Under the pieces are notes generated by a model that ran no database searches, was not told the DNA's origin, and saw nothing but the letters and a program-made list of their open reading frames with translations. DNA of 64,000 nt from contig NIVC01000065.1 of assembly GCA_002269645.1 (NCBI GenBank), positions 62,001 through 126,000 on the forward strand, given 5' to 3'. The translations under genes were made by a program, and so were the position numbers. This DNA comes from Macrostomum lignano (Eukaryota). How positions within the stretch are numbered: position 1 is the first letter of the stretch; each line of letters starts with the position of its first letter. Shown here in pieces: positions 4,759-49,520 of this stretch.

Positions 4759-5231
4759 ATGAGTTACTGTATTGAAATAATTGATGACTACAGATAATAT
4801 ATTGTGTGTGAGAACTTTATTAAGAAATAGCCTATTGGTCAACCCACATCCGGCCTATCAGTGAAGTTCGGCAGGCCCTAACCTTTTCCTACTACTCTAA
4901 CTAGCGTGTATATAAGTCTTTTGACACATTTGACTCATAAAGATAATTTCATAAAGTAAAATAATAAAGAAATTATAACTTTCAATACGTCAATTTCTGC
5001 CCAATTCTATAATTTTATTGTTGTATTTTTCCATCGCAAAGCCATAACTGTCTAATCGCTTTAATTAATTAATTTCGACACAGACTTACCTTAGAAGCAG
5101 CATAATGTAGATATTTGAAATCAGGTACAGCCGCTCCTTTTTAGCAACCTGTATTGATAGCGCACGGATAATGTTGCAAAGAAACATTGCCTTCTATTGC
5201 CTAAGCTAGCAGACCTCGTTCTGTATTTGGT

Positions 5232-8993: not shown

Positions 8994-10757
8994 TTACTGC
9001 TTTGAATTAGACTTTCGCTGCTTCAACTCCGAAGTCGTCAAATTCGTGTTTGGCGATACAAGGCATTCACTCTTCATCACGCAGAGCGCAGCAGGAACCT
9101 CTCCAGCGCTCATTCTTCTAGTTTGCTGTTCGACTCCTTCCGCATTAAATTGAGCTCGCCGACGACATCCAAATATTATCGCCGTGAGCAATCCAACTGA
9201 ACACAGAATGATCATAACTACGACTAGGGCAATAGAGCCATTTATAAACTGTTTTACCTGCAACTGCTGACTAAAAGTTTCATCCAGGAAACTTGTACAG
9301 TTCTTCGCACCTGCAGCAAGAGATTCATTCAAGGGGCTCTCGGGAAAGCTCAGCAGAGACCTGGCTGAGGAGCTGCAGCTCGAGAAGCTGAGCTGAGCAG
9401 TCGAGAATCCAGTAACCATCAGCGATGCGCACCCCACTGATTGACCAGAATCCCAAAGTCTTGGCTCCCTGCAGGTTCAGAAGGGGCTGATATGATGATT
9501 CTGCGAAGTTCAACGGCATTGATTCGATCACACTGCAGCACTTTTCCAATGTTGTCACTTACCTAACCAGAAGAAAAAGTTCTTGGGCATCTCTGGGGCT
9601 GATTGGGGCAGCTGAGCACGAGCCAGCGGCATTGTCAAGATAAAACATTGTGCTGGACGATACATTGTACAACAGTCCGACTCTGACTGGGACTTGGCTT
9701 AGGTCCAGAGGCATGAGGAATGGGTAGCGATGCTGTCTCTGTTTATCTGAAATATGCGTCCAAGGATACAATGCTGTGAACTTTTAATAGTAATGACAGA
9801 AGTATAAAACAGCTCAGCTCTGACATGCAACGACCAGCATGATCAGCAGCTCAGCACTGAGTACCCATGAGCAATGATCAGCATGAGCAGCAGCTCAGCA
9901 CTCACTGTACCCATGAGCAATGACCAGCATGAGCAGAAGCTCAGCACTGTACCCATGAGCAATGACCAGTATGAGCAGCAGCTCAGCACTCACTGTCCCT
10001 CATCAGCTCATCCAGCTGCTCCTTCCCGGAGATCGCAGCCAGCTCAACTCCAGTCCCGCTCAGATCCGACAGCCGCAGCTCCGAGTCGGAGATGAAGAGG
10101 CAGCGGCTCCGATGCAGCAGCATGTGCCTGCCGCAGAAGTCCTTCTTGGCCACCGCGATAGTCAGCTCGATGCGACCGCAGCTCGCGCTCGGCTCGGAGT
10201 CGCCCGTCGAGAACCGGACCGTCAGCAGCTGCGAGCTGCTCAAGCGATTCGGGTGAATTGTACTCAGTATTTGATATATAGTAAACGAGATCATTGGACA
10301 CAATCGCCACCAACCTTCTCATGACAGGTACAATCAGAGGCGCTTCTGGCAGCGAGGTCGCGTTGGTCCACTTTCTGACGAATGCGGATCCTGAATGAGG
10401 GAAGCAGAGGTTGTCAATGCAGAGCTTGCGCGTCAGTCATGTTAAACAGCCGCAGCTGTCAACAGTCGACACCTGTGGCTCAATCGCTCACCCTGCAGCT
10501 CCGCGGTCAGCTCAGACGGACATCCGGGTCCACTGGCAGCAGCACCCGGTCGACGGTGGCCGAGACGAAGCGACAGCATGAGCTGCAGCGGCTGAGTCAT
10601 GCGGCCCAGCCTCACCTCCCAGCTGCATCGCTGCGATGAGGCGAGTCCGTTCACCTCCCAGTGGTTGGTAAGCAGAGTCTCCGGCTGGTCTGAGTCAGCG
10701 TTCATTGAGAACGCTTTGATGCTGTCCTGGATGCAGTAGTGGTGAGCAGCCTCGATC
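8994..10757 (-). CDS. Single-pass membrane protein, CUB-like + C-type-lectin-like + TM (paralog A); signal-peptide exon not located
   Basis: Manual splicing gives one open frame over exons 10757-10492, 10390-10315, 10238-9994, 9773-9563 and 9468-8994 (intron phases 1,2,1,2). Motifs are QRCSWEVRL...GC and SSSQLLTVRFSTGD (CUB-like), FCGRHMLLHRSRCLFIS...LAAIS and VRVGL (CTLD-like), and TM SIALVVVMIILCSVGLLTAIIFGC followed by RRR. An AATAAA lies ~25 nt after the stop. Domain names are inferred from motif resemblance. Confidence 0.72.
9832..9993. repeat. 42-bp minisatellite (3-4 degenerate units) in intron 3 of paralog A
   Basis: Unit CTGTACCCATGAGCAATGACCAGCATGAGCAGCAGCTCAGCA, the same as at 28073-28372. 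Confidence 0.9.
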
Positions 10758-11972
10758 CTTAAGAGTGGATTTCATTGCATTGCTTCCATCAGAAGAATGA
10801 ATTTGAATAAAATTTAGAATGCATGAAGGTTTAGAATCTGAATATGCAAAATGAGGCACTCTTGATTTGATGTGAGTTTTTAATATTGGAATTAAGTTAA
10901 GCGCTGTCTTATTCCAAAGGGAAGTTGCTATGAGAATGAAGATCCAGGATGTCGGTTCATCGTACGCACGTCGTACATACGGTTTGGCTACTCTTTGTAG
11001 TTAAGATCTATTTGTAAGTTTTATGTGAGTCACGTTCGTGTCTTCCACTCTGATGAAACTTTTCCAAGGTTGGCGGACGACTGTCAGAATAGCTGCAGAG
11101 TTTGATGCCAATATGCAGAAGGATACTGCATACCGCATTGGATTGTTGCTCTTCGGCCGGGGCGCATCCAGCAGAAGTTCATGAGATAAATAGGTTGATC
11201 AGCATTGGTGTCCATTTAACTCCTGGGTCCTTCAGCCTGCTCTAGAAAGGCGGAGAGTTTTTTTGGACCAGGGCAACCTTTGGAGACATGCCAATATGCA
11301 GACAGAGAGACTACTCTTGAAGCTGCATGCGGCGGGAACAACAAGGCGGGCAGACCTTGTGCTGAATACTTGTCAATGATACTGTTGTGTATCATTCGTT
11401 GCTTCTCATTGCTTTTTATAAGGGGGGGGGCGGTGGGGGTGGGTGATGTTGTGTATGCGGCTTGTACGCCGGTTAGAGTTCTTGCAGTTTGATTGGCTGG
11501 GTGTTTGTCTGTCTGCCCAGACCGGCCTAGACCGGGTGGGGGTTTGATGTTTGCTGAATCATGCTAGTTAGCTAGTTTAACTGTAATATAAGTGCGCACC
11601 GGCCTTTCAAGCCTTTGTGACTTTTCCTACCCCGCAATCTCTTCTCGCATCTAGTTCATTTGGCCACGCTGCCTCAAAGAACAACAGATACTTGCTAAGG
11701 AATTCGTGTTTACATTTAGATTAGCAATGTACGAGCGTAGGTTTAGTCTGTGGCGGAATAGCTGGACGAACGGCTTTGCGTAAGCATGCCAAGTTCGGTG
11801 GCTGAATTGAATTACCATAAATGCTATACATATGCAGGCGGTTTATATGATAGCAGTTTGCTGACATTGAAGGAGGCGTCAGCCTCTCTAATGCTGCAGA
11901 CGGTCTCGTCTATCTATAGTGCTACATCAACTTTCCGGAAATTTCTAGAAGGTTAAATAGCAGTAAAACCAA

Positions 11973-12549
11973 GGACGACTTAAGTAGGGCGGGGCGGGAA
12001 ACTTCATTTCTTGGAAATTTTTTGAAGGCAGGTTTTTTCGCAAAAAAACACTAGGAAGATTGGAAGTTTTCATTTTTTCAGCACAAAAATTGTTTTTGCT
12101 TTTGAAAGGAGGCAGATCCAGTGTTCATCTTCGTGTCTGTCTTATTGCTTTTATGTGTACATTTGCAGCACGTGTCTTTTGCCTAAAAACCATTGAAACC
12201 ATCATTCTTAGCTGACTGTGTAACAGAGATGATAAAATAGGCTCATACGCTCGTAAAACCAAATATTTCGAGCTGTGTATGAGTTTTGGTACTGGAAATC
12301 GACGTAGAATAAAAAATTAACATACAATCCTAATTTTATAAACAAAAATTTTTATGAATATCAATAGAGCAATAAGAAAGGCACAACATGTCAAAAGATG
12401 AACACTGGATCTGCCTCCTATCAAAAGCAATAACAAATTTTGTTCTTAAAAAATGAAAACCTCCTATCTCCGTAGTGTATTTTTTCGGAAAACTTGCCTT
12501 CAAAAAATTTCAAGAAAGGAGGTTTCCCGTCCTTCTACTTAAGTCGTAC
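11973..12549. mobile_element. MITE with ~230-bp imperfect terminal inverted repeats
   Basis: GGACGACTTAAGTAG...CTACTTAAGTCGTAC termini, with arms complementary through CAGTGTTCATCTT/AAGATGAACACTG. No clear TSD. Confidence 0.75.
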
Positions 12550-13907
12550 AACAATATTTAGTCACAATAACTATTACTACTTCAGGAGTATAAATTTATT
12601 TAAATTGCAACGAATTAATTGATGACTACAGATAATATATTATGTGAGAACTTTATTGAGAAACCCACCTCCGGCCAATCAGTGAAGTTCAGCAGGCGCT
12701 AACCTTTTCCTACTACTCTAACTAGCGTGTATGACTAGCGTTTTGACACATTTGACTCATAAAGATGATTTCATAAAGTAAAGAAATAAAGAAATTATAA
12801 CTTACAGTACGTCACTTTCTGCCCAATTCTATAATTTTATTGTTGTATTTTTCCATCACAAAGCCATCCTTGTCTAATCGCTTCAATTACTCTTGTAATT
12901 AATTTCTACACAGACTTACCTTAAAAGCAGCATAATCCAGACATTTGAAATCAGCAGGAACAGCAGCATCTTTTTAGCAACCTGCATTGATAACGCACGA
13001 ATATTGATGCAAAAAAACATCAATAGAGAGACATTGCCTTCTATTGCCTAGCCAGCAGACTGCAATAGCTATCTAGTGCAGTTAACCCAGAAAATGGCTT
13101 TACTGAGAAAGGGAGGTGATTTTCCTGGAAAGGGAGTCAATTTTATATTTATAAATGTAATGGTGTACGCTCTGTAACGAGGAACTACAGGCTAAGTACG
13201 CAGCCATTTAAAATAGCACGGGACAGTGTGCGGAAGCGCGTTGCCTAGGGGATTCTGATGATTCAAAGCGGATGATTTCTAAAATGCCGCACAAAGCTAG
13301 GAAGAAAAATGGGCTGGAGCCTGGACCCAATGCTCAGACTTTCCTGTGGATAGTTGGGACGTTTCTTCGGCGACATTTTTTGCTGGAAACGGACTACCAC
13401 AGACCAAGGTTCTATTTTGGTCTCCGCAGTGCTAGAGGGGAACTGCTTAATTAGGAAGTTTCGTCACGCTAAATATGCGGAAGCGAAGCAAGAAACGAAT
13501 TCAAACATTAGAATCCAACCACAGGAAACTGTTTTTATGGCGATTCCGTTTCTGGCCCCTTCCTACGCAGGATTTTGGGCCCCTTGCTTCGTTTCGTGCG
13601 TAGCTTTTATACGCATGAGTAAGTGGACGGAAACGGACTGGGTCGTATTATGGGATTATATACGTATTTCTATCTAACAACACCATAACAACGGTACACA
13701 CAGGGTCACTCTTACTGCATACCAGGCTGTACAGTTCATACAAAATTTCATTTTTTCGAGCCTGTATAAAACCTGAACCTGCATTGGCAGACATAAACTC
13801 AGTAAACAGACAAATACGCAACACAAAAACTCATTTTCAGAACTGACAATTGAAATGACGCCAGCGACAGCGATTTAAACTTTCCAATTATAATGTTATC
13901 GATGCAT

Positions 13908-13911
<4 letters not shown>

Positions 13912-13994
<83 letters not shown>
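13912..13994. repeat. (TC)n microsatellite, about 41 units
   Basis: Direct observation. Confidence 0.99.
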
Positions 13995-13998
<4 letters not shown>

Positions 13999-14453
13999 AG
14001 TCGCCGGTAAGTTCCTATTACTAATTTGTGCTCTAATCGCCTTTGCTTATCCGGGGTTTGCCTATTTTCCATTGCTTGATTAGAGAGCTGATCCAATTTT
14101 GATACCGTAGCTTTTTGCTGTATTTTACTCAATAGTGAAGTCGCCTAATTGCCTGATTATTTGCCTAAGGGCCTAATTATTAACTATTAACTAACCTCAT
14201 CATTATCCACTCTTTCACCATCATTTCACTCATGGCTTGCTAAGGCTTTCTCCCGGGGTGGCAAAGCATAAGGAAGTTGGGTAAGCTAATGGCCTCTCCC
14301 CGTGCAAAGCCCTCCTGTGAGTGCGTGCTGCGGGGCCGTGTGTGCGTGCAGTAGAGGGATTAGCGAGTCCTGGCACAGAATGGCAGTAGGAAGGTTGCAA
14401 CCCCATGCTGACGCGTCCCTTCGCCCTGAGCAATCTAAACTATAGACAGTACA

Positions 14454-14896
14454 TGTTCGCCTCATACTACTCTTAGTAATCAAAGTCGCAAGTCAGCCTC
14501 GCTCACAGTCACAAAGGATCCCCTGCTGAGAAATCCTCCAGATTGAGCCCAGAGTTCCCGATCATGCCCCAAGCAGAGTCCCTGTACTCGGCTGCATGTG
14601 TCTCCCCTGTTAGCCTAAATCTCCTGGTAACCATCCCAGGCGGGGCTCTAGCCTCGATAGGTCTGGTAGTAAGATCCAGGTGCGCCAGGTCACATAGAGT
14701 GGTGGCAGCCACTCGGTCATACTATGACCGAGTGACCAACTATTGCACCTTGGCTACAGGTGGGGTCCATGTGGGTCCTTAGCCCTCTGGTCACAAAGCG
14801 CTACCAAAGCTATCAATCATGTGGGAGGGACAGTCTGGTGCTGGAGGTCCGTCAGGTCATTGCCCGGTCATAGGCAGCCTACGGAGGGCGGTTACA
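14454..14896 (-). mobile_element. Possible solo-LTR-like segment
   Basis: The minus strand starts TGTAACC and ends TTGATTACTAAGA...GAACA, resembling the end of 17040-18059. No TSD found. Confidence 0.3.
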
Positions 14897-14899
14897 TCA

Positions 14900-15484
14900 C
14901 TTTCATGCTATGAAAGTCCGATTTTTAAGTGCTTCCTGCTGTGAGCAGCATGAATTTGTTCGCATACCCTTGGCCATAGAAATACACACCGCATAGTGCT
15001 TCTATGCTCACTCAGAAGAAAGCCACAAGTACAGCTGATCAAGCACAGAGCTGCAAGACAGCAGCTGCAAGATTTGTTCCAGTCATGGACCCTAACATTC
15101 ACTCTACAGAAGGGCAGAGACACGCAATGTTTACACTCTGAAGTCTTGGTCAGAGATGCCCTGAAATTCACGAAAACCTGACCCGCATTCACGGTCCCGA
15201 TTCCATCAGTCGACGAACAGTTTACAGGTTGATTGAACAGTTCGAGGCTGGCTGCAGATATCAAAGGCCAACCACCTTTGGGTAAGTTGGCAAAACATAC
15301 TGCCGGCCAGCCTCGAACTGCTGTCTTGCAACTCTGTGCTTGATCAGCTGTACTTGTGGCTTTCTTCTGAGTGAGCATAGAAGCAAAATGTGGTGTGTAT
15401 TTCTATGGCCAAGGGTATGCAAACAAATGTATGCTGCTTACAGCAGGAAGCACTTATAAATATCGGACTTTCGTGGCATGAAAG
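14900..15484. mobile_element. MITE-like long inverted repeat (~165-bp arms, ~250-bp spacer)
   Basis: 14900-15064 is the reverse complement of 15318-15484 (e.g. AAGCCACAAGTACAGCTGATCAAGCACAGAG). Confidence 0.75.
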
Positions 15485-16501
15485 CTAAAATAAGCCGCTA
15501 ACTTTTAAGGCATATGATTTTTTAACACACATTATTAATTGTCGAAGCAAGCAAAAGTGACACTACTTCTGGGACACGTCTCGTATATTATTCCATAGAA
15601 TAAAAGCGGAGTGTGGAACCCAAGCACCTGAACAAAAATCCACAAAGTAGGCAGAAAACTATGTGTCTACTTCCGATAAGATCGGCTTTCGTGATTATTT
15701 TGCATTGGATCGCTAGTTTCCCGCCCGTATTTAGCAGTCCGTAGCATTGCCTATTTGCGTTCTTATGGAGTGGAAGTTCCCCTTTTCGATTTTTAACCGG
15801 AACAGTAAAATAATCTGTACGGGCATCAAGCGTACATGTATAGAAGGAACTTGAATACATGAATGTACATTACAGTGTACTTTTCAATGAGGAACTTCCA
15901 TTCTATACAAACAAGAATGGAAATAGAATTGTACTTTGTTGCCACCCACTGTTTAATGGCAAGCTTCAAGGCGAAATAACTGCGTAGTGAACCACGTCTG
16001 TGCTCTAAAGTGCACTCAAAGAGGAACTTCCGTAAGAGTTCCTTTTATTACACTGTACATCTGTACGCGTCGGGGTAGTTAGAGATTGGAGAGGGTTGCT
16101 ATGGGCGAGACGGGGGTCTGTGGGAGAGCGGGGTTTGGGGGGCAGAGCGTAGAGCCGGGCGAGCCGGCGAGGACTGAAGCATGGACTTCTACAAATGGCA
16201 TCTGGAACTCTTTCTCCTTCCTCTCTTATACCCGAATTCGTAGCATTCATAGAAATCCAGATCGGATCACGTGATTCCTATGTATCGATCGCTTATAGCA
16301 GAGAGCCAGGGAGCTGAAGCTACAAAATCCGACTCATATATTAATATATTGGATTACTTTATATATATATTACATTAGATTAGATTCGTATATTAGATAT
16401 ATATACCAAATATATATCTCGCCATGGGCGATGGGAGTGGTCAAAGACCAATATCACCAATGGTTTCCCATGGCTACGAAGAGGAAAAGGGGGAAGGAAG
16501 T

Positions 16502-17032
16502 ATATATACACTTGAAAGATTGTAGATTGTAGATTGAGACGCAGAGGGAGGCTCACAGAACAGGCGGGAGGGGCAGGCAGCAGCAGCCTGAGGGGTCAGC
16601 TCAAGCGCCTGCAAGTCAGCGATGAGGCAGTCAGTTAGAGTGGCAGTGTGGGCCTGGCGCAATTTGGTCGGCCGGTGCAGCATGGCCAAGGCCAGAGGGA
16701 CGGGCGTACCGCGACCCAGGGTCCGTAGGCAGTGGCCCAGCAGCATCTGTTGGCGCCGGCGCAGGGTGGCGCTCAGGGGCAGATCGGCAGGCGATCCGTG
16801 TAGTGCACGCCCAGCGCGTAGGGCAGCAGCGATCGGTAAAGCGCTTCCAGGGCTCGCTCTCGCGTTTCAGTTAGCGGCACAGCCTCCATGCCGTACAGCA
16901 GGATCGGCTCGACGGCCGCGCGGAACAGGCGTACCTTCTGCTGCAGGCAGTGCTGCACTTCAGTGCAGTGCAGGCTGCACTCCACGGCCATGACAGCGCC
17001 CAGGCCAGTGCTGCCACAGACGAGCTGCAGCG
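16502..17032 (-). mobile_element. RTE-clade LINE 3' end (post-RT region + short-repeat tail)
   Basis: KVRLFRAAVEPILLYGMEAVPLTETRERAL...LGVHY and RRRQQMLLGHCLR. The tail CAATCTACAATCTACAATC lies at about 16517-16537. Confidence 0.85.
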
Positions 17033-17039
17033 CATATAC

Positions 17040-18059
17040 TGTAGAGTAATATATCTCCCAGAAAAGTTATTTAAAATTGTTAATGTACTACTTATATAGT
17101 AGTAAAATGAAGAGCATGAATAAGGATATATATATATATACGAGATATATATTTGAATCAACCAATAGAAAGAGAGAAGAAATCTCGAGCATGCTAATTT
17201 TAGAAATCACCCAATCACGTGTGACCCGCGCTTGTCAGCTCAAACCCCAGGTGAGATGCATCACTCATGTGAACAAATCAAATGTAACTAAAAATAACTC
17301 AAATGCAGTAACCAATCTTGCGCTTTTACACTAAACCAATGGAGTAACTTTCTAACCTGCCATGTTTGACAGCAACCAAACCGTGACCCTTTGACAGTTG
17401 AGAAGTCGAACTCACCTGACCTCATGTGGGGGTCCGTATGCCTATAAATACAAGTGGTCTAGAGCGGACCGGAGCCTCAGATTTTGGACTCCAGGAGGAG
17501 CAGCTCCGAAGAGGAAGCCATCAGAGGACTTCCTAGCTAAACTCGCTCAAGTTCTTGCGGTAAGCCTTTCTCATTTGCGCCCGTTGGTTGAGACGTCTCA
17601 CTTGCGTTGAGTTAGAGTCTGTTGAGACTCTTGAGTCTATTGAGACTCCATTGGCAGTAGTCTCCAGAAGGACTACCCTGATAGATCTTAGTAGACTATC
17701 AGTGATTACCGGAGCTATACCTAGAGTGCATAGAGGCACTGCTAGAAGGAGAAGGCTTGGCTTAAACTGCAGTTAGGCGCAGGGTACCCATTGTTAATAC
17801 GAAGCTTCCTATTGGTCCGAACTACAGATACCGGCCGGCAAGAAGTCATTGAGGACAAAGAGGACCGGACCAGACACCGACGAGAGGCGCCCGATATACA
17901 AGACTTCGAAGGTCTAATAGCGAGAACAACTCTCAGGAAGAGATAAACCGATCAGTACTCGAGGTAATAAATACCTTCATTTGATTACTGGGTTGCCTAG
18001 CTAAAGAGCTAGAAGTGATTGTTCCTTGATTACTAAGAAAGACTTGGTAGTAAGGAACA
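17040..18059 (+). mobile_element. LTR-like ~1-kb segment at the RTE inversion junction
   Basis: TGT...ACA termini, several CCAAT boxes, TATAAATA (~17442), a GTAAG donor-like site and AATAAA (~17967). No TSD. Confidence 0.45.
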
Positions 18060-19336
18060 CATCAATACGCCCATCGGATTGAAGCCTTCATCGAAGAGGC
18101 TGTGAGCGAAATCCAACTCACAACTGACAACTGCCGCCATATTGCTGCTTGGAGGACCATCAACCAGCTGACTGGTAGGTAACCCAGGCCCAACACCATC
18201 GTCGGCGCTGATTCCAACGAGCACTGCAAGGCCCTGCTGGCCACCTAGGTGTTCAACGCGGCCGCTCCAACTGCGCCTCTTCTGCCAATCCCAGACTTCG
18301 CTCCAGCCCAGCCAGGCGCCTTCAACACCGGCCCCATCACTGCAGGCGAAGTTGACCGAGCACTGAGGACCATGCGAGCTGATGCCGCCGCCGGGGTGGA
18401 CGCCATCCCTCCCAGGGTCCTGAAGCTGCCCGAGCTCACCCCGATCATCACCTGCCTGCTGAACAAGCACTGCAGCCTTGGAGGCAACGAGACCGCCTCA
18501 GCTCCTCAGCAATCGCGCACATCCAAGATTGTCTCCATCACGAAGAAAGGCGCCTCCACCAGCTTGGACAACCAGCGGGGCATCGCGCTGGAATGCACAA
18601 CGCCGAAGCTGCTGAACGCGATTCTGCGCAACCGCCTCCTGCCCGGCCTCAGCCCGCTGCTGCTGAGCCTCCAAGCGGCTTCCGCCCGGGCAGGTCCACC
18701 ACCGAGCAGGTTGCCACCATCCGCTCTGTCATCGAGGCCTGAAAGACCCGCCAGCGCTCCGTGTCAATCATCTTCGTCGACTTTCGCAAGGCGTTTGACT
18801 CGGTGTCCAGGCCTGCGATCGCGTGGCTTCTATCTCGTTATGGCGTACCTGCTGCGCTGGTGAGCGCGGTGATGGACATCTACCGCGACTCCAGGGCTTT
18901 TGTCATGTCGAGCGACGGCCCCACAGAAGAGTTCAGCACCAGCTCAGGCGTCCTTCTGGGCGACACGCTGGCTCCTCTGCTCTTCCTCGTGGTTGTGGAA
19001 TACGTGCTTCGGCGGTCCCTCCACGAGAATGACAGCTACTTGCTGGTCCCACGCCGAAGCTCACCCTGCTGTTTCGCTTCCTGCTCTCGCGTATGCTGAC
19101 GACATCGCGCTGGCTCTGCCGCGATCCAGCTGCTGCCCAGCGCGCTCTCACAAGGCCCTGCGACGAGGGTGCCCGTGTTGGGCTGCTGGTGAACGCTCGC
19201 AAGACGGAGGCGCTGCACGTGGGCACGAATACCGCCTTAACTTTCACGCTGCCCAATGGAGACCGTATCGCGGTGTGCGAGGACTTCTGGTACCTCGACG
19301 CCCTGATGATGAGCCCCGATGCGATTGTCTCCGACA
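18060..19336 (+). mobile_element. RTE-clade LINE reverse transcriptase fragment (frameshifted)
   Basis: AAGVDAIPPRVLK, NQRGIALECTTPKLLNAILRNRL, IIFVDFRKAFDSVSR, GVLLGDTLAPLLF, LAYADDIAL and LLVNARKTE are non-LTR RT motifs. Confidence 0.93.
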
Positions 19337-19534
19337 GGAAAGGAAGTGAAGAAAGACTAAGGGAGACGGATGAAAGGAGAACAAGACAAAGGAAAAAGAG
19401 AAGCCTAAAAACTTTGAGACACCTGGCTCTTTAAAATAGATTGGCTTGATGCCAGGATTAGCTAATGCTGCAGGTAGAGCATTTCATAATTTACAGTGAG
19501 TGGGAGTAGAGCACCGCTTCTGTTGCTCTGTTCT

Positions 19535-19798
19535 AGACAAAGGAAGCTTAGAGGTGTGCTGGGCTGTTTTGCTGATGGAACGGAGACCACAGTGTGACTG
19601 TGTAGCAAAATGATGGTGGAGCTGCTGAAGTTCACTGGAGCCCCTGACCCCGCAGAAGTCCATGGACAAAAGCAAGTCCACCAGCAGTTTTGCGAGTGCT
19701 AAGTCTGTATGGAAACTTGAAGGAGTCACCAATGATCCTGGCAGCCTTCTGCTCGACATGGTTCAATAAATTAAGATGGGACTGACTGGCAGATCTCC
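19535..19798 (-). mobile_element. CR1/L2-group LINE 3' ORF2 fragment
   Basis: LWRSASQSHLNLLNHVEQKAARII...STRKTAGGLAFVH...PLSRT is the typical post-RT tail of CR1-group elements. Confidence 0.65.
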
Positions 19799-20689
19799 AT
19801 AAAAGGGAACTTTGTTTAATTGTCAAATATTAGTAATGGAACATGTGGTAAACACAGTAAATTAAAAAATGTAAATGTGCATTTTTTCAAAACAGTACTA
19901 AAAATAGTTTAAAGAGATGAAAATATTGCAAAAATGTAGTTTTTTAAAATGAAAGTAGTTTAAGACAGTTAGAGTATTGTATCTTTACTACTGACAGTAG
20001 GCACACGAATATTTGTACAGTACGTTTGACCATTGATTACTTCGAAGTTTGCAGTGAATCTCCATGTCGTTCAATAAACTATGTCGAAATTTAAATCTTT
20101 CGTTATTTTTTTTAAATTAACATTCGTGATTGTCAACTTCAGGTCCTACATGTAGTTGCATGCTATTCGATTAAGCTAGATCTAGTTCGATGTAGATTCT
20201 AGAAGGACGAGGACAAGACTAAGACGTTCCGTTTTTTAAGAACAAAAATTGACGGCTCACCTGTCAACAAAAAATACTCTTAAAGATAGGAAAAAAATCT
20301 TTATTCACCTAAAACTTTGTGACTGCATTTGACTGTATTTGGCCGTTATATCCCGGAGCTTTTCTTGTATTTGCTTTATTTAGTCTGTTGGGAGACGGGG
20401 GTCCAAGTTGATGCGCGATTGTCGAACGATAAGCTTTACGGCTTGTAAACAATAAAATTATTTGGCAATGAAGTATAAGTAGTGAGCAGTGTAGGCGATC
20501 TTAGAATGTTGTTGAATGTTGATTTGGACTTTTATTTATTTATTACCATTAATGAACTACTTATAAGTACTGCAGGCATGCACATGCTACTAAATAGTCG
20601 ATAACCTAAAAAATGCTTAAAAATACATTTGCATTTTTATTTTAAAACACTTTAAAAGTTGTTAATAACACACCGGCAGCTGGTGCTCA

Positions 20690-20877
20690 TCAGTCAGCTT
20701 TGCGACAAGGCAGATTCCACACCTGATCGCAATTAAACACGACAGGTACGGGAGCTGGTGGAAAGGCGAATTTTGAAGAGATCTGGCGCGAGTAAACTCG
20801 ACCACCTGCTGAAGTTTTGAGACTCGGCTCGACGGTCTTCGATTGGGAATCCTTCGGTCTGAACTTTTTGAGGAAAT
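20690..20877 (-). CDS. Terminal exon of an unknown gene (tail with VYSRQI...AFPPAPVP)
   Basis: TTTTCCGCAG acceptor, phase 1. It reads (D)FLKKFRPKDSQSKTVEPSLKTSAGGRVYSRQISSKFAFPPAPVPVVFNCDQVWNLPCRKAD* and joins in frame to exon 21515-21468. Confidence 0.5.
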
Positions 20878-20976
20878 CTGCGGAAAATATGAAACAATAT
20901 ACAAAAATACAGCTTGTTATCGATATAAATGGATCATTTGCTTAAACTTTAAGATTCTGCACCAGGGAACTGTTAC

Positions 20977-21388
20977 GACCCTCTGTATCCTTCAGTCAGG
21001 AGTCTGTTGTGACACCCTGTATCCTTCAGTCAGGAGTCTGTTGTGACCCTCTGTATCCTTCAGTCAGGAGTCTGTTGTGACCCTCTGTATCCTTCAGTCA
21101 GGAGTCTGTTGTGACCCTCTGTATCCTTCAGTCAGGAGTCTGTTGTGACCCTCTGTATCCTTCAGTCAGGAGTCTGTTGTGACCCTCTGTATCCTTCAGT
21201 CAGGAGTCTGTTGTGACCCTCTGTATCCTTCAGTCAGGAGTCTGTTGTGACCCTCTGTATCCTTCAGTCAGGAGTCTGTTGTGACCCTCTGTATCCTTCA
21301 GTCAGGAGTCTGTTGTGACACTCTGTATCCTTCAGTCAGGAGTCTGTTGTGACCCTCTGTATCCTTCAGTCAGGAATCTGTTGTGATA
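20977..21388. repeat. 34-bp minisatellite x~12 (intronic)
   Basis: Unit GTGACCCTCTGTATCCTTCAGTCAGGAGTCTGTT, nearly invariant, with no spacers. Confidence 0.97.
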
Positions 21389-21467
21389 ACCTGCAGCCAA
21401 GATACCTTTCTGAGGTTGTGACTAAAGCTCGAATTGAAATAATAAGATTAATAAATATACTACTTAC

Positions 21468-21515
21468 CAGCAACTTTGCAATACAATCTTTCCATAAAGT
21501 TCATTGCGTAAGCAA
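21468..21515 (-). CDS. 48-nt symmetric phase-1 exon (VAYAMNFMERLYCKVA)
   Basis: TTGTAG acceptor, CTG|GTAAGT donor, in frame with 20877-20690. Confidence 0.4.
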
Positions 21516-22129
21516 CTACAAGCAGCATAAATATTGAAATATCAGATAATAGAATATTTTACGCAGTACAGAATGCCGCGGTATTTGCCTCTAGCGTCCT
21601 TGGCAGTGAAAAGAATGTTTTAATTTCAATATATTTATTTGCAACATTGAACTTACCACATGTGTATTTATATGTACATGAAAGGCCGTGCAGACCCCCC
21701 TCCCCCGGCCTAAAAATTGTACAAGCCACTTGCAGAACTGGTAGGGCTTTGATAATGGAGTGCTAAACAGTCAATTCTTTCACAAATGCTTCTACAACCC
21801 CCACCCCCACCATTCATAACACTGTCAGGGCTGGTATATTGCCGAACACTTTGAAATGCTTCCTTTGTATTATGCTCTTATCAGAGCAAAGTGGACCAAT
21901 GAGGCCCAAGTTTATTATTGCGCCGATCTCAAGTAAACAAGACGCAATTGTTAACGACTTTGCTGATTGTTGAGCACGTTTATTGTGTTTAATTTACCAG
22001 CAGAGTTTTTATAAAACTTTGTTGAGCGGAGGTGAGGTCACAGTCATTTAGGAGGGGGTCACAGTCCCCCAGGCCCCCTTTTTAGCAGGGATCGCGGTAA
22101 TCCTAATTATCCAGAGGCAATTAGTGGGG

Positions 22130-22480
22130 TCAGTACAGTCCTCCCCAGGTCATTCAAAAGGGGTCACAGTCCTCCCCAGGTCATTCAAAAGGGGTCACAG
22201 TCCTCCCCATGTCATTTAATGGTGGTCACAATTCTCCCATGTCATTCAATGGTGGTCACAGTTCTCCCCATGTGATTCAACGGGGTCACAGTCCTCCCCA
22301 TGTCATTCAATGGTGGTCACAGTTCTCCCCATGTCATTCAACGGGGTCACAGTCCTCCCCAAGTCATTTAATGGTGGTCACAGTCCTCCCCATGTCATTT
22401 AATGATGGTCACAGTCCTCCCCATGTCATTTAATGGTGGTCACAGTCTTCCCCATGTCATTCAATGGTGGTCACAGTCCC
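22130..22480. repeat. 31-bp minisatellite x~11
   Basis: Unit GGTCACAGTCCTCCCCATGTCATTCAATGGT. Confidence 0.95.
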
Positions 22481-22833
22481 CACTCCCCACCCAAATTATT
22501 TATTAAGGCTCAAAATCACAAATATGACTTCTCATAACTGTGCTTAGTTACATTTGAGTCTGTATTTGAAGCTCTCGAATTCAATAATTAACTGTACAAA
22601 ACCCGTGAGTGCATCATAATAAGTTTACCGGGTACATAGGGGCATAAAAGCAGAAAGGCTATGGAAAAGAATGGTTCAAAAACGCTGCATTTTAACAAAA
22701 TGCTTTGATAAATAAATAGGAAAGCAATTATTGTTGCACAAAATGAATTCACCCTATGAAACGGAACTACATGTATAGCAATTGAATAGTTCAGAAGTTG
22801 TACAGAAGTTGAACAATAACAATGCACTTCTTT

Positions 22834-23061
22834 TCAGCTGGGATTCGATTTTCTGCTCGACCAGAGCATGACGGGCACTGGGAAAGGTGGGAAGGCTCTG
22901 TAGCGAGCAATTTGGCTGGGATAAACTTGAACGGTGCTGCTGCTTCTGCTGCTGCTGTTGCTGCCTGCTGATAAACTGTTTGTGGATAATTTAGTAGCCT
23001 CTGGCTTTGACTCCTGCTTCTTCACAGCATCCGAATTTGTTGAAAGAAATTTTAGCTTCAT
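22834..23061 (-). CDS. Terminal exon paralogous to 20690-20877 (VYPSQI...AFPPFPVP)
   Basis: The ORF track peptide shares the motif with the manually translated 20.7-kb exon. Splicing to the upstream exon 23311-23187 is frame-ambiguous. Confidence 0.4.
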   Translation of the reverse strand: MKLKFLSTNSDAVKKQESKPEATKLSTNSLSAGSNSSSRSSSTVQVYPSQIARYRAFPPFPVPVMLWSSRKSNPS

Positions 23062-23186
23062 CTGTTGCAGCTTGCTTAGATGATTGATTGCAGACGATCT
23101 GAGATAACACAGGGGTTAAGTATCTGTGAATATTATAGTTAATCAATATTTTATAAGCTTTTACGATTATTGTAATTGTATCTTAC

Positions 23187-23311
23187 CTGAGGCCTTCGAT
23201 CGATATTCTATGAAGAATATTGGAAAGCACACTGCGATGTTTAGACTCTTCAGTTAGTCTGTAAAGCTCTTGGCCTGCTTGATTTATTATCGTTATAAAG
23301 CTTTCGTATTG
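23187..23311 (-). CDS. Probable internal exon of the same unknown gene
   Basis: TGACAG acceptor and CAG|GTAAGA donor, followed by a 63-nt AT-rich intron. The reading frame is uncertain. Confidence 0.3.
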
Positions 23312-24111
23312 CTGTCAGAGAATTTTTTATAGACGGCTTGTCTGGAGGACTATCGGATTGTAAAAATTTTCCATTGTGTACCCAAACACTGTACACTCAA
23401 TAATGGGCAGCCCACGGCAAGGCCAGGGGAAGTCCGCTGCTTTGCCTTGGGCAATCCTCCTAGGTTCTATTTTTAGACATGAGTATCGGACAGAGTTTGG
23501 TTGGTTCCCTTTCATCGGTTAGTCATTGGGCTAAACGTTTCACTAAAGAACGGCAGATGCTTTTCTATTCTTTCTTTCCAACTGAAGTGACTGACAGTTG
23601 CATGAAAAAGGCAGAAGTTTGCTCGCACTAAAAGTTCCACTCGTTTGCACAAAAAAGCATGTGCTTGTGCTGGTTCAGAAATTTGCTATTTAAGTAAACA
23701 GAGCGTGTTTGCAAAACTATTTCCTTTCAGTTCTAGTCATGTGATTTGACAAATTCTCAGACAAGTACAGGACAAGGACTTCTCTTAGCATGTATCTTGG
23801 ACTGGTACATGTATTCACTTATTTTTAGCGGTCCATGACCGCTTGCAAGCATGGCCTTTCAGCTTGCATTGCACTGCTTTCTATTTTACTCTGTTTCCTG
23901 TCATTCGATACTTTTTTATAGAACATGGGCTCGGCTCGGCGCTCTCTCTGCTTTTAGCTACTTCTATCGTGCATTATAGAAACAGCATAATGAAATTGTA
24001 TGTACATGTATACAGTAAAGTAGAGAATAAAGGCGTGGTGAGTCATAGCAGATAGAAGCCTCTTTATTTTTCTCTGAGCCATACCAGATACACTGATTGT
24101 TTTTAAGTAGT

Positions 24112-25320
24112 GGGGTGAGATTGTGAGAGTTTGGGTGAGACTGTTAGAGTTGGGGTGAGACTGGTAGACTGGGGATGAGACTGTGAGAGTTGGGTGAGAC
24201 TGTGAAAGTTGGGGTTAGACTGTGAGAGTTGGGGTGAGATTGTGAGAGTTGGGTTGAGACTGAGAGTTGGGGTGAGACTGGTAGACTGGGGGTGAGACTG
24301 TGAGAGTTGGGGTGAGATTGTGAGAGTTGGGTTGAGACTGAGAGTTGGGGTGAGACTGGTTGACTGGGGGTGAGACTGTGAGAGTTGGGGTGAGACTGGT
24401 AGACTGGGGATGAGACTGTGAGAGTTGGGTGAGACTATGAGAGTTGGGTGAGACTGGTAGACTGGGGATGAGACTGTGAGAGTTGGGTGAGACTGTGAGA
24501 GTTGGGGTGAGACTGGTAGACTGGGGATGAGACTGTGAGAGTTGGGTGAGACTGTGAGAGTTGGGGTGAGACTGGTAGACTGGGGGTGAGACTGAGAGTT
24601 GGGGTGAGACTGGTAGACTGGGGATGAGACTGTGAGAGTTGGGTGAGACTGTGAGAGTTGGGGTGAGACTGGTAGACTGGGGGTGAGACTGAGAGTTGGG
24701 GTGAGACTGGTAGACTGGGGGTGAGACTGGGAGAGTTGGGGTGAGACTGTGAGAGTTGGGTTGAGAATGGGAGAGCAGGTGTGAGACTGGGAGAGCAGGA
24801 GTGAGACTGGGAGAGCAGGTGTGAGACTGGGAGAGCAGGTGTGAGACTGGGAGAGCAGGTGTGAGACTGGAAGAGCAGGTGTGAGGCTGGGAGAGCAGGT
24901 GTGAGACTGGGAGAGCAGGTGTGAGACTGGGAGAGCAGGTGTGAGACTGGGAGAGCAGGTGTGAGACTGGGAGAGCAGGTGTGAGACTGGGAGAGCAGGT
25001 GTGAGACTGGAAGAGCAGGTGTGAGACTGGGAGAGCAGGAGTGAGACTGGGAGAGCAGGTGTGAGACTGGTAGAGCAGGGGTGAGACTGGGAGAGCAGGA
25101 GTGAGACTGGGAGAGCAGGAGTGAGACTGGTAGAGCAGGGGTGAGACTGGGAGAGCAGGAGTGAGACTGGGAGAGCAGGAGTGAGACTGGTAGAGCAGGG
25201 GTGAGACTGGGAGAGCAGGTGTGAGACTGGGAGAGCAGGGGTAAGACTGGGAGAGCAGGGGTGAGACTGTGAGAGCAGGAGTGAGACTGGTAGAGCAGGG
25301 GTGAGACTGTGAGAGCAGGA
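24112..25320. repeat. GA-rich minisatellite (10-bp mosaic grading into 20-bp GTGAGACTGGGAGAGCAGG[T/A/G] unit)
   Basis: Direct observation. It explains the 430-aa ORF. Confidence 0.96.
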
Positions 25321-25589
25321 ATGAGAATGGAATACGACTAAATTAATTGAATTGGAATACTCGGAGAACTGGGAGCTTGCAGACATATTTGCCACTGTCC
25401 AGTGTTTATATTTAATAACAGTCGATCCTTTAAATGGAGATGCAGAGTATAAAGGAATGAATTTTTGGATTTATAGTCAGAATCAGTCTGTGAGCAGTCC
25501 AGTTCAGCTGCTCATCAAATTCCGATGCAGAGCAACGAATTCACAGCCGCCAAATGCCGAAGCAGGCGAGCGGGTGGTAGGTAGGGAAT

Positions 25590-25812
25590 ACAAAATCCCG
25601 AGTTTTGCCAATCCCGGGATTCTCGGGATCGGGATATCCCGGACTTTGCCAATCCCGGGATTCTCGGGATCGGGATATCCCGGACTTTGCCAATCCCGGG
25701 ATTCTCGGGATCGGGATATCCCGGACTTTGCCAATCCGGGGATTCTCGGGATCGGGATATCCCGGACTTTGCCAATCCCGGGATTCTCGGGATCGGGATA
25801 TCCCGGACTTTG
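25590..25812. repeat. 41-bp palindrome-rich minisatellite x~5.4, possibly a TE subterminal relic
   Basis: Unit AATCCCGGGATTCTCGGGATCGGGATATCCCGGACTTTGCC, preceded by TAGGGAATACAAAATCCCG. Confidence 0.9.
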
Positions 25813-26131
25813 CCAGTAGACGTGCTTTTTTACATGCCAGTATCAGCTCAGGAAAATCCCACTTGATTGTGATGTAACCTGGGGAATGATAGCTCACAGA
25901 GATATGGCCCGAGGTACTGATACCAGGGTAGAAGAGGATCAGAACTCACCCTCCCAGAGGCACCCGCCCTAGATGGAGAACTGGTAGCTTGGGTTGTGGT
26001 CCGATAGCAAGGTCCCACTTCCCTAATCCCAACTATACGGCCAAGGAGTTTTGAAGGTAGGGACTGCTTAAAGTTCATGTAGTTCTGCCACCACCCCCTA
26101 TGCTGGGCATCTAAAGTGTATCCTGACAGAG

Positions 26132-26317
26132 CTAAGAAGTGAGTCCCCCCGCAACAGCCAACAAGAGCCAGTAGTCCCCAGCAACTAAACTGCAGCTCAA
26201 AGGCAGCTTTCCGGGGCACTCGATGATCCCGCCAGCTGGCAGGGCGGCAGCCCCCTGCTGAGCAGCCGCAGTCAGGCAGACCAGCAGCATCGCAGCCTGC
26301 AGTTTCCTGAAGTTCAT
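26132..26317 (-). CDS. Candidate first exon encoding a signal peptide
   Basis: GCCATG context. MNFRKLQAAMLLVCLTAAAQQGAAA has basic-hydrophobic-AxA structure. The donor is not resolved. Confidence 0.4.
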   Translation of the reverse strand: MNFRKLQAAMLLVCLTAAAQQGAAALPAGGIIECPGKLPLSCSLVAGDYWLLLAVAGGLTS

Positions 26318-26692
26318 GGCTGTCCTCTGCTACTGGAGAGAATGATGGCTGCTTTGCAAGAATTTTTTGGGAGATCTTGGTGCGGAAAAATTGCCTCTGA
26401 CCTGAGTCCATTTTATAGACTTCTCGAACCGTTTCTGCCTTCAGGTATTTGTTTTTTTCGACAATTATATTTTGCAGAAAGCTTTAAGAAATTGGACTAC
26501 TCTTTACAACTAAAAGAAATTTTTTTCCAAGTTTAGGGCAGTTTTTTGTTTATTTGAAATCTGCTTTTCTTCGCGCTTGTTCACCAACATCAAAGAACAT
26601 CAAAGACTGAAAATTCAGAAAAATTTTCTGACTAGCTTTCATTTGAACCGATAATTGATGGCGCATAAAAACTGAGGATCTGGGAAGGACGC

Positions 26693-26911
26693 CGCTACCC
26701 TCCCTGATCCTCAGAGTGCACCGCTTACCCTCCCTGATCCTCAGAGTGCACCGCTTACCCTCCCTGATCCTCAGAGTGCACCGCTTACCCTCCCTGATCC
26801 TCAGAGTGCACCGCTTACCCTCCCTGATCCTCAGAGTGCACCGCTTACCCTCCCTGATCCTCAGAGTGCACCGCTTACCCTCCCTGATCCTCAGAGTGCA
26901 CCGCTTACCCT
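26693..26911. repeat. 30-bp minisatellite x7
   Basis: Unit ACCCTCCCTGATCCTCAGAGTGCACCGCTT. Confidence 0.97.
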
Positions 26912-27277
26912 CTACTCCTCTAAATAAACTTAAGATTTTCCTACTTGCAGCATCTGCAATAATTAAAAAAGGCCATTACTATTCGAATATTAAAAAAATG
27001 TTCCGAGTAAACTTATGATGCCTAGCAACATATGATGTTATGCTGTATGGCAGTTTGAGTACAAGAATGATATCGCTTTTCATAAATACAATATGCACTG
27101 CACCTAGCTAGACCATATTTTCTAACAAGAGATTAAAAGGAAGACTGTTGCGTAAAAAGACACATAAAACAAAATTATGATAACGTCAGTTTAAACAGTC
27201 AGGTACTCGCGATACTTTTTCATATGGTACCAATCGTCTTTTTCCAGGACAAACATAGGGCGATTTAATTTCAACCA

Positions 27278-29136
27278 CTAAGATCTTAAAGGGATTCCAG
27301 ACAATGAATCAAAGGGTTTGGACCTTCTAGATCTGCGACGAGGTCCTTGTCGCTTTAAAGTTATAAATTTAACAGCAGCGACAAGAATCACGGCCAACAC
27401 TAGCAGTGAGGCTGTCACAGACACTATTAAAGCTATCAGATCAGTTTTATCTGAACTGTCCGTTTCTTTATCAGTTGATTCTTTAAAAATCACATGCTTG
27501 CTCAAATCTTTACAGCCGGTTATTGTGGATTCCAAGCAGTTGGAGTTGTGTTGCAAATCTTGATTGATTGGCTCAATTAGGAAGCTCAGCAACAGGTGCT
27601 GCGGCTGGTCGCAGTCAATGAATGACAATTTTAGTTTCTCCGAATCGTCAGGTTCAGCACTGATTGATGCGCAGTCTACCTGTGATGAAATGGACTGGTT
27701 CCTGGAATGATTAATTAGGTAATATGGTGTTTACATTTTCTTAAACAGGCAAGGACTGCCAAGAACAGCCAGGCATCACTCAGGTAGCCAAGAACTCAAT
27801 AAACAGTCTTTGTCATGAACTAAAAATCAAAGCCTGTACGCCCATTAAACGAAAAGCAACGAACCGTCGAGCAAGGGAATCCAAAGCAGCCCCAGTCGTG
27901 CTGAAATTCCCGATCACGCACGAACTGGAGCTCACTGACTGTCCAATCTGCGTCCATTGAATGATTTTGTTGCAACGAAACACCGCCACTCTCACAGGTC
28001 TGGTCAGGTTCAGCGGTCTGATGAATGGGTGCGCCTTCATTCTGTCACTATCTAAAATAACGGCGTTTATAGACTGTACCCATGAGCAATGACCAGCATG
28101 AGCAGCAGCTCAGCACTGTACCCATGAGCAATGACCAGCATGAGCAGCAGCTCAGCACTGTACCCATGAGCAATGACCAGCATGAGCAGCAGCTCAGCAC
28201 TGTACCCATGAGCAATGACCAGCATGAGCAGCAGCTCAGCACTGTACCCATGAGCAATGACCAGCATGAGCAGCAGCTCAGCACTGTACCCATGAGCAAT
28301 GACCAGCATGAGCAGCAGCTCAGCACTGTACCCATGAGCAATGACCAGCATGAGCAGCAGCTCAGCACTCACTGTCCCTCATCAGCTCATCCAGCTGCTC
28401 CGTCCCGGAGATCGCAGCCAGCTCAACTCCAGTACCGCTCAGATCCGACAGCCGCAGCTCCGAGTCGGAGATGAAGAGGCAGCGGCCCCGATGCAGCAGC
28501 ATGTGCCTGCCGCAGAAGCCCTTCTTGGCCACCGCGATGGTCAGCTCGATGCGACCGCAGCTCGCGCTCGGCTCGGAGTCGCCCGTCGAGAACCGGACCG
28601 TCAGCAGCTGCGAGCTGCTCAAGCGTTTCGGGTGGGTTTGACTTACCAATAAACATATTAAATGAGATCATTGGACAGAAACGCCACCAACCTTCTCATG
28701 ACAGGTACAATCAGAGGCGCTTTTGGCAGCGAGGTCGCATTGGTCCACTTTCTGACGAACGCGGATCCTGAATGAGGGAAGCAGAGGTTGTCAATGCAGA
28801 GCTTGCGCGTCAGTCATGTTAAACAGCCGCAGCTGTCAAGAGCCGTCCCGGTGGCTCAATCGCTCACCCTGCAGCTTCGCGGTCAGCTCAGACGGACATC
28901 TGGGTCCGCTGGCAGCAGCACCCGGCTGACGGTGGCCGAGGCGAAGCGATAGCACGAGCTGCAGCGGCTGAGTCATGCGGCCCAGCCTCACCTCCCAGCT
29001 GCATCGCTGCGATGAGACGAGTACGTTCACCTCTCTGTGGTTGGTGAGCAGAGTCTCAGGCTGGTCTGAGTCAGCGTTCATTGAGAACGCTTTGATGCTG
29101 TCCTGGATGCAGTAGTGATGGGCTGTCTCGACTGTG
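27278..29136 (-). CDS. Single-pass membrane protein, CUB-like + C-type-lectin-like + TM (paralog B)
   Basis: One open frame over exons 29136-28868, 28767-28692, 28617-28373, 28051-27865 and 27701-27278, with the same intron positions and phases as paralog A. The TM LIALIVSVTASLLVLAVILVAAVKFITL is followed by KRQGPRRRSRR. Confidence 0.72.
28073..28372. repeat. 42-bp minisatellite x7 in intron 3 of paralog B
   Basis: Homogeneous units starting directly at the exon-3 donor. Confidence 0.97.
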
Positions 29137-35183: not shown

Positions 35184-35223
35184 GTCTGCAAAGGGATAGG
35201 AGATCTGCTGTGCTGTGTCCTGA

Positions 35224-49446: not shown

Positions 49447-49520
49447 GGGGCCGTAGCCCAGCGGTCTAGCGCAGGCTCTGGTGTGCCAGCGACCCAGGCT
49501 CGATTCCAAGTGCAGTCACA
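49447..49520 (+). mobile_element. tRNA-derived SINE head (or tRNA pseudogene)
   Basis: A-box TAGCCCAGCGG (49454-49464) and B-box GGCTCGATTCC (49497-49507) at tRNA spacing. The acceptor stem does not pair. Confidence 0.55.

Follow-up and report, generated by a model that had tools for sequence, protein, structure and literature searches.

An exon and its adjoining intronic minisatellite are nearly uniform among diverged paralogs of a predicted receptor family in Macrostomum lignano

Gene models and the shared core

The window analysed here is a 64,000-nucleotide (nt) stretch of eukaryotic, minisatellite-rich DNA from Macrostomum lignano with an overall GC content of 0.47. It carries three tandem members of a family of predicted cell-surface receptors: gene B (8994-13020, reverse strand), gene C (27278-29354, reverse strand) and a partial gene A. 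Two Mlig_3_7 loci, L001 on NIVC01000065.1 and L002 on contig NIVC01000064.1 of GCA_002269645.1, supplied five extra copies (L1a-d and L2c) and the remainder of gene A, for a comparison of eight copies in total. Exon 3 and an adjoining 42-nt minisatellite are 95-98% identical across all eight, and past the array the sequences of the copies are unrelated.

Exons 1-5 of B and C can be modelled with canonical GT-AG sites and with the same intron phases (1, 2, 1, 2) in both genes (Table 1). An earlier note on this DNA had described two intact five-exon genes; those exons, phases and open reading frames (ORFs) stand, but each gene has a sixth, upstream exon encoding a signal peptide, and the six-exon models predict intact proteins of 448 amino acids (aa) for B and 420 aa for C. 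The exon-1 frame is open 5' of the start codon chosen in that note and takes in the first CUB cysteine (..AAHHYC..). In B, UniRef gene model P0007 (98.9% identity to B 10765-10493) splices the signal-peptide exon onto exon 1 ('MFFCINIRALSMQVAKKMLLFLLISNFWIMLLL|RIEAAHHYC…'); in C, the corresponding exon is spliced to the acceptor at 29137/29136, and relatives of the beta type also have a signal-peptide exon, of matching phase. A different first exon for B at ~11.4 kb, marked by TATA/CCAAT-like motifs and a short ORF, was rejected: through a 12-nt deletion B lacks the ATG that A has there, the donor site is poor and P0007 favours the exon at 13020-12920 instead. Gene A lies outside the window past exon 1 because its ~1-kb intron 1 runs beyond the window start. 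Exon 3 of B and C has a tandem GAGCAG acceptor, and this exon is probably 242 nt long with the ..CAG|CTCGCAG acceptor, as in all other copies.

The exon-4 junction of C ('RR|NQSISS') is backed by NCBI model P0003, to which C exon 5 is 93% identical in aa sequence. Models P0004-P0006 omit the C-type exon 4, joining exon 3 to the exon-5 acceptor, which shifts the frame and ends the protein in 'RTSP[F/S]HHR*'. Skipping of this kind may give a secreted isoform with a CUB domain and half a C-type-lectin-like domain (CTLD).

Table 1. Coordinates of the features of genes A, B and C and of the long minisatellite arrays in the window.
Feature	Positions	Strand	Description
B exon 5 (B-type)	8994..9468	-	end of CTLD-like domain, stalk, transmembrane (TM) helix, 55-aa tail, stop; from ORF and splice sites
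B exon 4	9563..9746	-	184 nt, phase 1 in, phase 2 out; YPFLMPLDLSQVPVRVG motif
B intron-3 minisatellite	9827..9993	-	42-nt unit, 3.8 copies, 86% matches (Tandem Repeats Finder (TRF), pattern search)
B exon 3	9994..10238	-	core exon: last CUB strands and N-terminal half of CTLD
B exon 2	10315..10390	-	76 nt; type as in C; gene A has another exon-2 type
B exon 1 (alpha type)	10492..10757	-	acceptor cttaag|G; start codon of the earlier note at 10705
B upstream intron segment	10758..11463	-	homologous to A, without homology to C
B signal-peptide exon	12920..13020	-	MFFCINIRALSMQVAKKMLLFLLISNVWIMLLL; donor ag|GTAAGT, phase 2; found by scan, conserved in A
C exon 5 (C-type)	27278..27701	-	end of CTLD-like domain, stalk, TM helix, 25-aa tail, stop
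C exon 4	27865..28051	-	187 nt; weak donor cg|GTTCGT; HPFIRPLNLTRPVRVA motif
C intron-3 minisatellite	28073..28369	-	42-nt unit, 7.1 copies, all 100% identical
C exon 3 (core exon)	28373..28617	-	GC content at third codon positions (GC3) 0.89
C exon 2	28692..28767	-	
C exon 1 (alpha type)	28868..29136	-	acceptor catag|C; start codon of the earlier note at 29081
C signal-peptide exon	29293..29354	-	MCLLMPLVLTILLLSLALYI; donor cag|GTGAGT, phase 2; outside the range of the earlier note
A exon 1 (alpha type)	979..1244	-	gene A as a whole corresponds to P0001 and continues in L002
A candidate signal-peptide exon	5089..5187	-	homologous to that of B; P0007 residues 1-34, 71% identity
Long minisatellite arrays	24500-25400, 30600-32000, 35100-35900, 39500-42400, 42750-43650, 45200-46200		
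Long minisatellite arrays, continued	46700-49500, 50100-52200, 52650-53450, 55830-56450, 59150-60000, 62050-63100		

A BLASTN comparison of the window with itself returned a single tract shared by B and C (B 9810-10755 with C 28190-29131; 93.06% over 951 nt). Its 3' limit, at 9810 in B, is marked by the intron-3 array, which begins at the exon-3 donor. The same comparison pairs A 974-1242 with C 28863-29131 and A 974-1955 with B 10487-11463 (93.07%), and the exon-1 homology of C to A, B, L1a and L2c begins at 29131. Within the B/C tract, identity is 92.9% in exon 1 (18 mismatches), 95% in intron 1, 96% in exon 2, 77.6% in intron 2 and 98.0% in exon 3, where 5 of 245 nt differ. Exons 4-5, intron 4 and both flanks gave no DNA alignment with BLASTN; exons 4-5 are 40% identical in a codon alignment and 26-28% identical as protein (BLASTP E=1e-6). 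About five substitutions in exon 3 and an unalignable pair of 3' exons are what the earlier note had reported, together with peptide motifs that we recovered on the reverse strand (B 9726-9676 and 9392-9375; C 28031-27984 and 27628-27611). Its description of exons 1-3 and their introns as almost identical fits exon 3, exon 2 and intron 1, but is too generous for exon 1 and intron 2.

Synonymous divergence (dS) follows the same division. Between B and C, exons 1-3 have dS 0.088 and non-synonymous divergence (dN) 0.026, with dS 0.145 in exon 1 alone and 0.05 in exons 2 and 3 together, whereas exons 4-5 are saturated (proportion of synonymous differences, pS, 0.71; dN ~1). Proposed as recent, the sharing of exons 1-3 is so for exon 3, at 2% divergence, and less so for exon 1. 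Between 3' halves of the same type, dS is 0.23 and dN 0.16 for A and B, and 0.075 and 0.053 for C and L1c; the dN/dS ratio is 0.3 in exons 1-3 and 0.7 or more in exons 4-5. Judged from these substitutions, the 5' part is young and the 3' halves appear to be under weak or diversifying selection. Exons 4-5 of B differ from their Mlig_3_7 counterpart by 12 nonsynonymous changes to 1 synonymous, and the identity of the window to L002 steps from 99.75% (5993-1) to ~95.5% (9990-5990); together these could reflect either rapid evolution of B or a switch of haplotype or homeolog between the assemblies.

Sharing of exon 3 extends beyond this pair. The pattern is not one swap between two genes but a core, exon 3 plus minisatellite, homogenised across the family. 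Exon 3 differs at 4-12 of 245 nt among the eight copies in a star-like pattern, and every copy retains private substitutions. Its variable sites are spread over codon positions 1, 2 and 3 (5, 7 and 9 sites), so its similarity reflects recent shared ancestry rather than protein constraint. The homology shared by every copy has its 5' limit precisely at the exon-3 acceptor (..CAG|CTCGCAG) and ends at the array end; the array begins at the exon-3 donor, has 2.5-10 units among the copies and, in a pattern search, was found nowhere else in the window. Four independent homology blocks end in it: B with C; L001 6237-10567 with L001 12219-16264; L002 11796-17128 with L001 1-5167; and L1d with L1b and L1c. 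GC3 reaches 0.89 in exon 3, compared with 0.73 in exon 1 and 0.43-0.51 in exon 5 (B, C and L1c), and variable exon-3 sites become scarcer towards the minisatellite (16 versus 7, p=0.047). The GC3 peak and the thinning of variable sites are consistent with, although not proof of, GC-biased conversion whose tracts begin at the array or close to it.

Mosaic combinations across the family

The exons on either side of the core fall into discrete types. Exon 1 has two, alpha and beta; alpha copies are 90-96% identical to each other, and alpha and beta share 54% of nt and 26-31% of aa. For intron 2 there are three classes that are unrelated to one another, and the 3' halves beyond the array belong to at least five types (B, C, D, E and F), likewise unrelated, all of which have the same intron phases, a TM helix and the motifs 'P..RVG', 'C[AG]S', 'L.F..C' and 'SLLSF'. 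The family is old, with exon-1, intron-2 and exon-4/5 types that are saturated at synonymous sites and have introns that do not align.

These types occur in incompatible combinations: alpha with B (genes A and B), alpha with C (gene C), beta with C (L1c), beta with E (L1b) and alpha with D (L1a). Exon 1 of C is 92% identical to that of B and 54% identical to that of L1c (26% in aa); its exons 4-5 are 40% identical to those of B and 94% identical to those of L1c. Among C, B and L1c, the informative sites accordingly split 113:4 in exon 1 and 8:318 in exons 4-5 (Fisher p=8e-90), the incongruence between front and rear exons that the earlier note had anticipated. Its proposal of conversion or module swapping between old paralogs is likewise borne out, with dS 0.09 in exons 1-3, saturation in exons 4-5, and introns 1 and 2 included in the shared tract.

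Gene B changes affinity along its length. The upstream region and exon 1 are closest to A, the segment from intron 1 through exon 2 to intron 2 is closest to C (A having the other exon-2 type), the core resembles all copies, and exons 4-5 are closest to A, with exon 5 at 84% nt identity to A and 40% to C. The ~300 nt just 5' of the exon-1 acceptor (A 1245-1545, B 10758-11060) are 100% identical amid a region of ~93% identity; this stretch looks like a very recent short conversion tract. Two Mlig_3_7 copies are truncated: in L2c (L002 ~15454-17200) the array is joined straight to a B-like 3' untranslated region and exons 4-5 are deleted, and L1d (L001 ~18002-19441) has no exon 1 and starts in the middle of exon 2, ~560 nt past the end of L1c.

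The family is, so far, confined to M. lignano. Credible homologues came from this species only in searches that covered 5.8 billion clusters and 1.84 billion representatives, bacterial YDG-repeat proteins among the representative-search matches (P0010, P0013) being set aside as spurious. An exhaustive HMMER search added distant paralogs, every one from M. lignano, with alignments that reach through exons 4-5, and detected no homologue outside the species. Literature searches by gene identifier, and for Macrostomum combined with CUB, C-type lectin or gene conversion, returned nothing on the family. By these sequence and literature searches it is undescribed and lineage-restricted.

Other features of the window surround the receptor genes. 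A 29-nt minisatellite (7140-8594, 51 copies) is intergenic between B and A; related arrays (75-78%) occupy the equivalent intergenic spots after L1a and L1b (L001 6989-7586 and 12972-13395), making it a second repeat common to loci of the family. Upstream of B, overlapping ORFs of 145-204 aa on both strands (18033-19349), none with a Pfam match, lie at the margin of the homology between A and B (19337-19536 matched to 5830-6050) and may represent a degenerate transposon insertion. A neighbouring gene of the SKI/DACH family (33326-34995, reverse strand) is indicated by ORFs that match the c-SKI Smad4-binding domain (E=1e-23) and the SKI/SNO/DAC homology domain, and a series of ORFs at 56435-63794 (reverse strand) with weak XMAP215/CLASP TOG and HEAT matches is probably a ch-TOG/XMAP215-like gene with minisatellite-filled introns. 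Long minisatellite arrays, twelve in number and with repeat periods of 13-25 nt, fill a large part of the window; several are strongly strand-skewed in composition.

Predicted protein architecture

With moderate confidence, we predict a type I membrane protein consisting of a signal peptide, a CUB domain, a CTLD-like domain, a stalk, a TM helix and a short cytoplasmic tail. The earlier note had applied the labels CUB and lectin; they find no support in Pfam and depend on a profile of the superfamily and on a model, of middling confidence, for a distant relative. In alignment A4, four CUB cysteines and a C-x-W motif (C9, C45, W47, C80 and C135) are invariant across alpha and beta types. The superfamily profile A6 matched only CTLDs in the Protein Data Bank (PDB; 31 of 31 matches), led by DC-SIGNR (8rcy_A, E=3.2e-4) and including CD69, antifreeze protein type II, CLEC4C and KLRs. 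These matches reach only the N-terminal half of the CTLD ('C.RDML.FNG.CY..S…LA.F.S..E…F'), which is encoded by exon 3 in B and C. Profiles built from the subfamily alone (alignment A3 covering the 3' domain and A4 covering the CUB region) gave no useful match in the PDB, and Pfam searches of distant relatives found no CUB or Lectin_C match (E<=0.01/10). UniProt calls several relatives 'CUB domain-containing'; elsewhere the same segment is named FHA, PAZ or MHD.

The structural model is of P0020, a distant paralog with ~20% identity to B and C, and was obtained with AlphaFold2 (AF2) from a 17-sequence alignment (predicted local distance difference test (pLDDT) 63.7, predicted template-modelling score (pTM) 0.62). 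Residues 22-148 of this model are all-beta, and Foldseek places this mid-confidence CUB part of a distant paralog near neuropilin a1/a2, the meteorin CUB, Neto2, C1r CUB2 and spermadhesin (E 4e-4 to 6e-3, prob 0.96-1.0, TMt 0.44-0.55). The CTLD part matches the carbohydrate-recognition domains of BDCA2, DCIR2 and CLEC4D as well as snaclecs (prob 1.0, TMt 0.5-0.58, E ~2e-3); its order of secondary-structure elements fits a CTLD, with pLDDT 45-72 in the C-terminal half. Homology between the subfamily in the window and that of P0020 runs through exons 4-5.

On this model, the exon 3/4 junction would fall in helix alpha2 of the CTLD, and the core exon would bridge the CUB domain and the CTLD. The split between a CUB half and a lectin/TM half that the earlier note had drawn is not supported: exon 3 would encode the end of the CUB domain and the N-terminal half of the CTLD, and the junction would lie inside the CTLD. 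Exons 4-5 would then provide the loop side of the CTLD, putatively facing the ligand, and the membrane anchor. Direct reading of exons 4-5 in A, B, C, D, E and F-type sequences found no EPN/QPD or WND motif, so a functional 'lectin' label is unsupported; in the same exons, both cysteines of the canonical CTLD outer disulfide (the alpha1 Cys and the C-terminal Cys) are absent. The TM helices and tails of B and C, also read directly, have no YxxL/I/V motif and no charged TM residue; lacking an immunoreceptor tyrosine-based inhibitory or activating motif (ITIM/ITAM) and TM charge, they give no evidence of activating or inhibitory pairing.

Exchange between paralogs and its alternatives

What calls for explanation is a mosaic with sharp boundaries, low dS that extends to introns, phylogenetic incongruence and a GC3 peak. 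We favour, at a probability of about 0.75, exchange within a tandem, lineage-restricted family, by ectopic gene conversion and by unequal crossing-over, with the minisatellite as its boundary. Repeated ectopic (non-allelic) conversion would keep exon 3 and the 42-nt array alike in all copies, and larger exchanges, whether by unequal crossover or by long conversion tracts, would repeatedly stop at the end of the array and re-assort whole 5' blocks (intergenic region, signal-peptide exon and exons 1, 2 and 3) with differing 3' halves. C would be a chimera of an alpha 5' part, closest to B in intron 1, exon 2 and intron 2, and a C-type 3' half, which elsewhere sits behind a beta-type 5' part; B would be a patchwork of A-like, C-like, all-copy and again A-like segments. 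We infer that breaks or pairing within the minisatellite start the exchanges, that the 5' limit lies at the exon-3 acceptor because homology between the ancient paralogs stops there, and that recognition and anchor modules may thereby be recombined on a constant scaffold.

The closest competitor, which we consider unlikely, dispenses with conversion: a few unequal crossovers or partial duplications broken in the intron-3 array, with the likeness of exon 3 reflecting duplication age. Long blocks of 3-5 kb, 93-97% identical, were indeed duplicated whole from intergenic DNA to minisatellite, and exon-3 divergence (2-5%) resembles that of these blocks. Crossovers in intron 3, however, give no 5' boundary at the exon-3 acceptor across three intron-2 classes, and exon 3 is 97-98% identical even where intron 2 is unalignable and exon 1 only 54% identical, as between B and L1b. 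Nor do they fit the internal patch of B (intron 1 to intron 2), which differs in affinity from both flanks, or the fully identical 300-nt tract of A and B inside a region of ~93%.

Selection without exchange is highly improbable. Uniformly ancient paralogs, with exons 1-3 under extreme purifying selection and exons 4-5 evolving fast, would account for the lower dN/dS of exons 1-3 (0.3 against 0.7 or more), and an exon that spans two domains may be structurally constrained. The dS of 0.05-0.15 in the shared tract against saturation in exons 4-5, the 95% identity of intron 1, an intronic minisatellite common to all copies, the even distribution of exon-3 variable sites over codon positions and the incongruent trees all contradict it. 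The earlier note had listed such selection, extending to introns, as a possible refutation, along with an assembly chimera.

Equally improbable, in our estimate, is an artefact in which chimeric assembly or consensus polishing homogenised paralogous repeats. The genome is extremely repeat-rich, the family is tandem, and the step from 99.75% to ~95.5% identity with Mlig_3_7 in adjoining parts implies that assemblies differ locally. Against this, independent data show the junctions again: UniRef P0006, from another assembly, is 100% identical to exons 1-3 of C and runs into C exon 5; P0007 matches the signal-peptide exon and exon 1 of B; and both A and the 3' half of B recur in the Mlig_3_7 locus L002. 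Exon-3 copies each have private substitutions, and frames and splice phases are intact over all junctions. The least probable alternative is that exon 3 and its array form a mobile or captured element (for example transposon-borne) that entered unrelated genes in separate insertions: the two boundaries are sharp and the same in every copy and the array occurs nowhere else in the window, but position, orientation and splice phase are constant, the flanking exons are homologous as protein, distant members without DNA-level similarity hold the equivalent coding segment, and a non-exhaustive search saw no transposon hallmarks.

Several points weigh against the exchange that we favour, or against parts of it. 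Polishing of a long-read assembly could inflate identity among paralogous exon-3 copies; the few copies compared do not separate conversion from crossing-over; and the initiating role given to the minisatellite is deduced from its location at tract ends only. The spliced transcripts, expression and function of B and C are predicted only, and the C-type exon 4 has a weak donor, with three public models that skip it and so truncate the protein. A dN/dS of 0.7 or more in the 3' halves could come from decay or from relaxed constraint as readily as from diversifying selection. The domain assignment is challenged by Pfam, in which B and the 3' half of C matched no family at E<=10 and neither CUB nor Lectin_C was found, and by the AF2 model of the family's own P0003 (4-sequence alignment), which reached a pLDDT of 43.

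The process that we propose is well known, and it is the family that is new. Concerted evolution shapes tandem receptor families such as primate KIR/LILR, the rodent Ly49/NKR-P1 CTLD receptors, CEACAM/PSG and the Siglec 'paired receptors'. Like KIR/LILR-type families, the M. lignano genes are tandem paralogs with one homogenised extracellular exon, divergent TM and tail regions, hybrid genes and incongruent trees; unlike them, they belong to another phylum and an unrelated, lineage-restricted family, their unit is a single domain-bridging exon with an intronic minisatellite, and they have no ITIM/ITAM or charged TM residue. In the Sp185/333 (SpTransformer) immune clusters of sea urchins, microsatellites flank the genes and bound duplicated or converted segments. 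Both systems are fast-evolving mosaic tandem families with tandem repeats at the ends of shared segments, but the M. lignano repeat is a 42-nt minisatellite in an intron within the gene rather than a flanking micro-repeat, and its mosaic units are phase-conserved exons rather than 'elements' in one exon; Sp185/333 are immune clusters, whereas an immune role of the M. lignano genes is hypothetical. CUB and C-type-lectin domains are combined in many nematode CLEC proteins and in attractin. The M. lignano proteins share the predicted extracellular order of CUB then CTLD, and differ in having no Pfam-level match, no EPN/QPD or WND and no outer disulfide.

The locus offers a very clean natural case of exon-restricted concerted evolution, in which identity stays at 95-98% for one exon and the intronic minisatellite next to it while the rest is saturated. 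With a splice acceptor as one boundary and an array end as the other, it allows a test of whether minisatellites seed or delimit ectopic exchange, and whether receptor halves can be shuffled by that exchange, in a species that is a genetically tractable regeneration model. The predicted CUB–CTLD-like proteins are reasonable candidates for recognition receptors because the variable half is the presumptive ligand side, and we offer an immune or recognition role as a hypothesis. It is improbable that the core is an evolved recombination module in which array breaks re-assort CUB fronts with variable CTLD-loop/TM backs, in the germline or even somatically in neoblast-derived tissues, to give individual-specific receptor repertoires. 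To our knowledge no such receptor-diversification system is known in the flatworm phylum, and a module of this kind, if real, would constitute one for self/non-self, pathogen or mate recognition.

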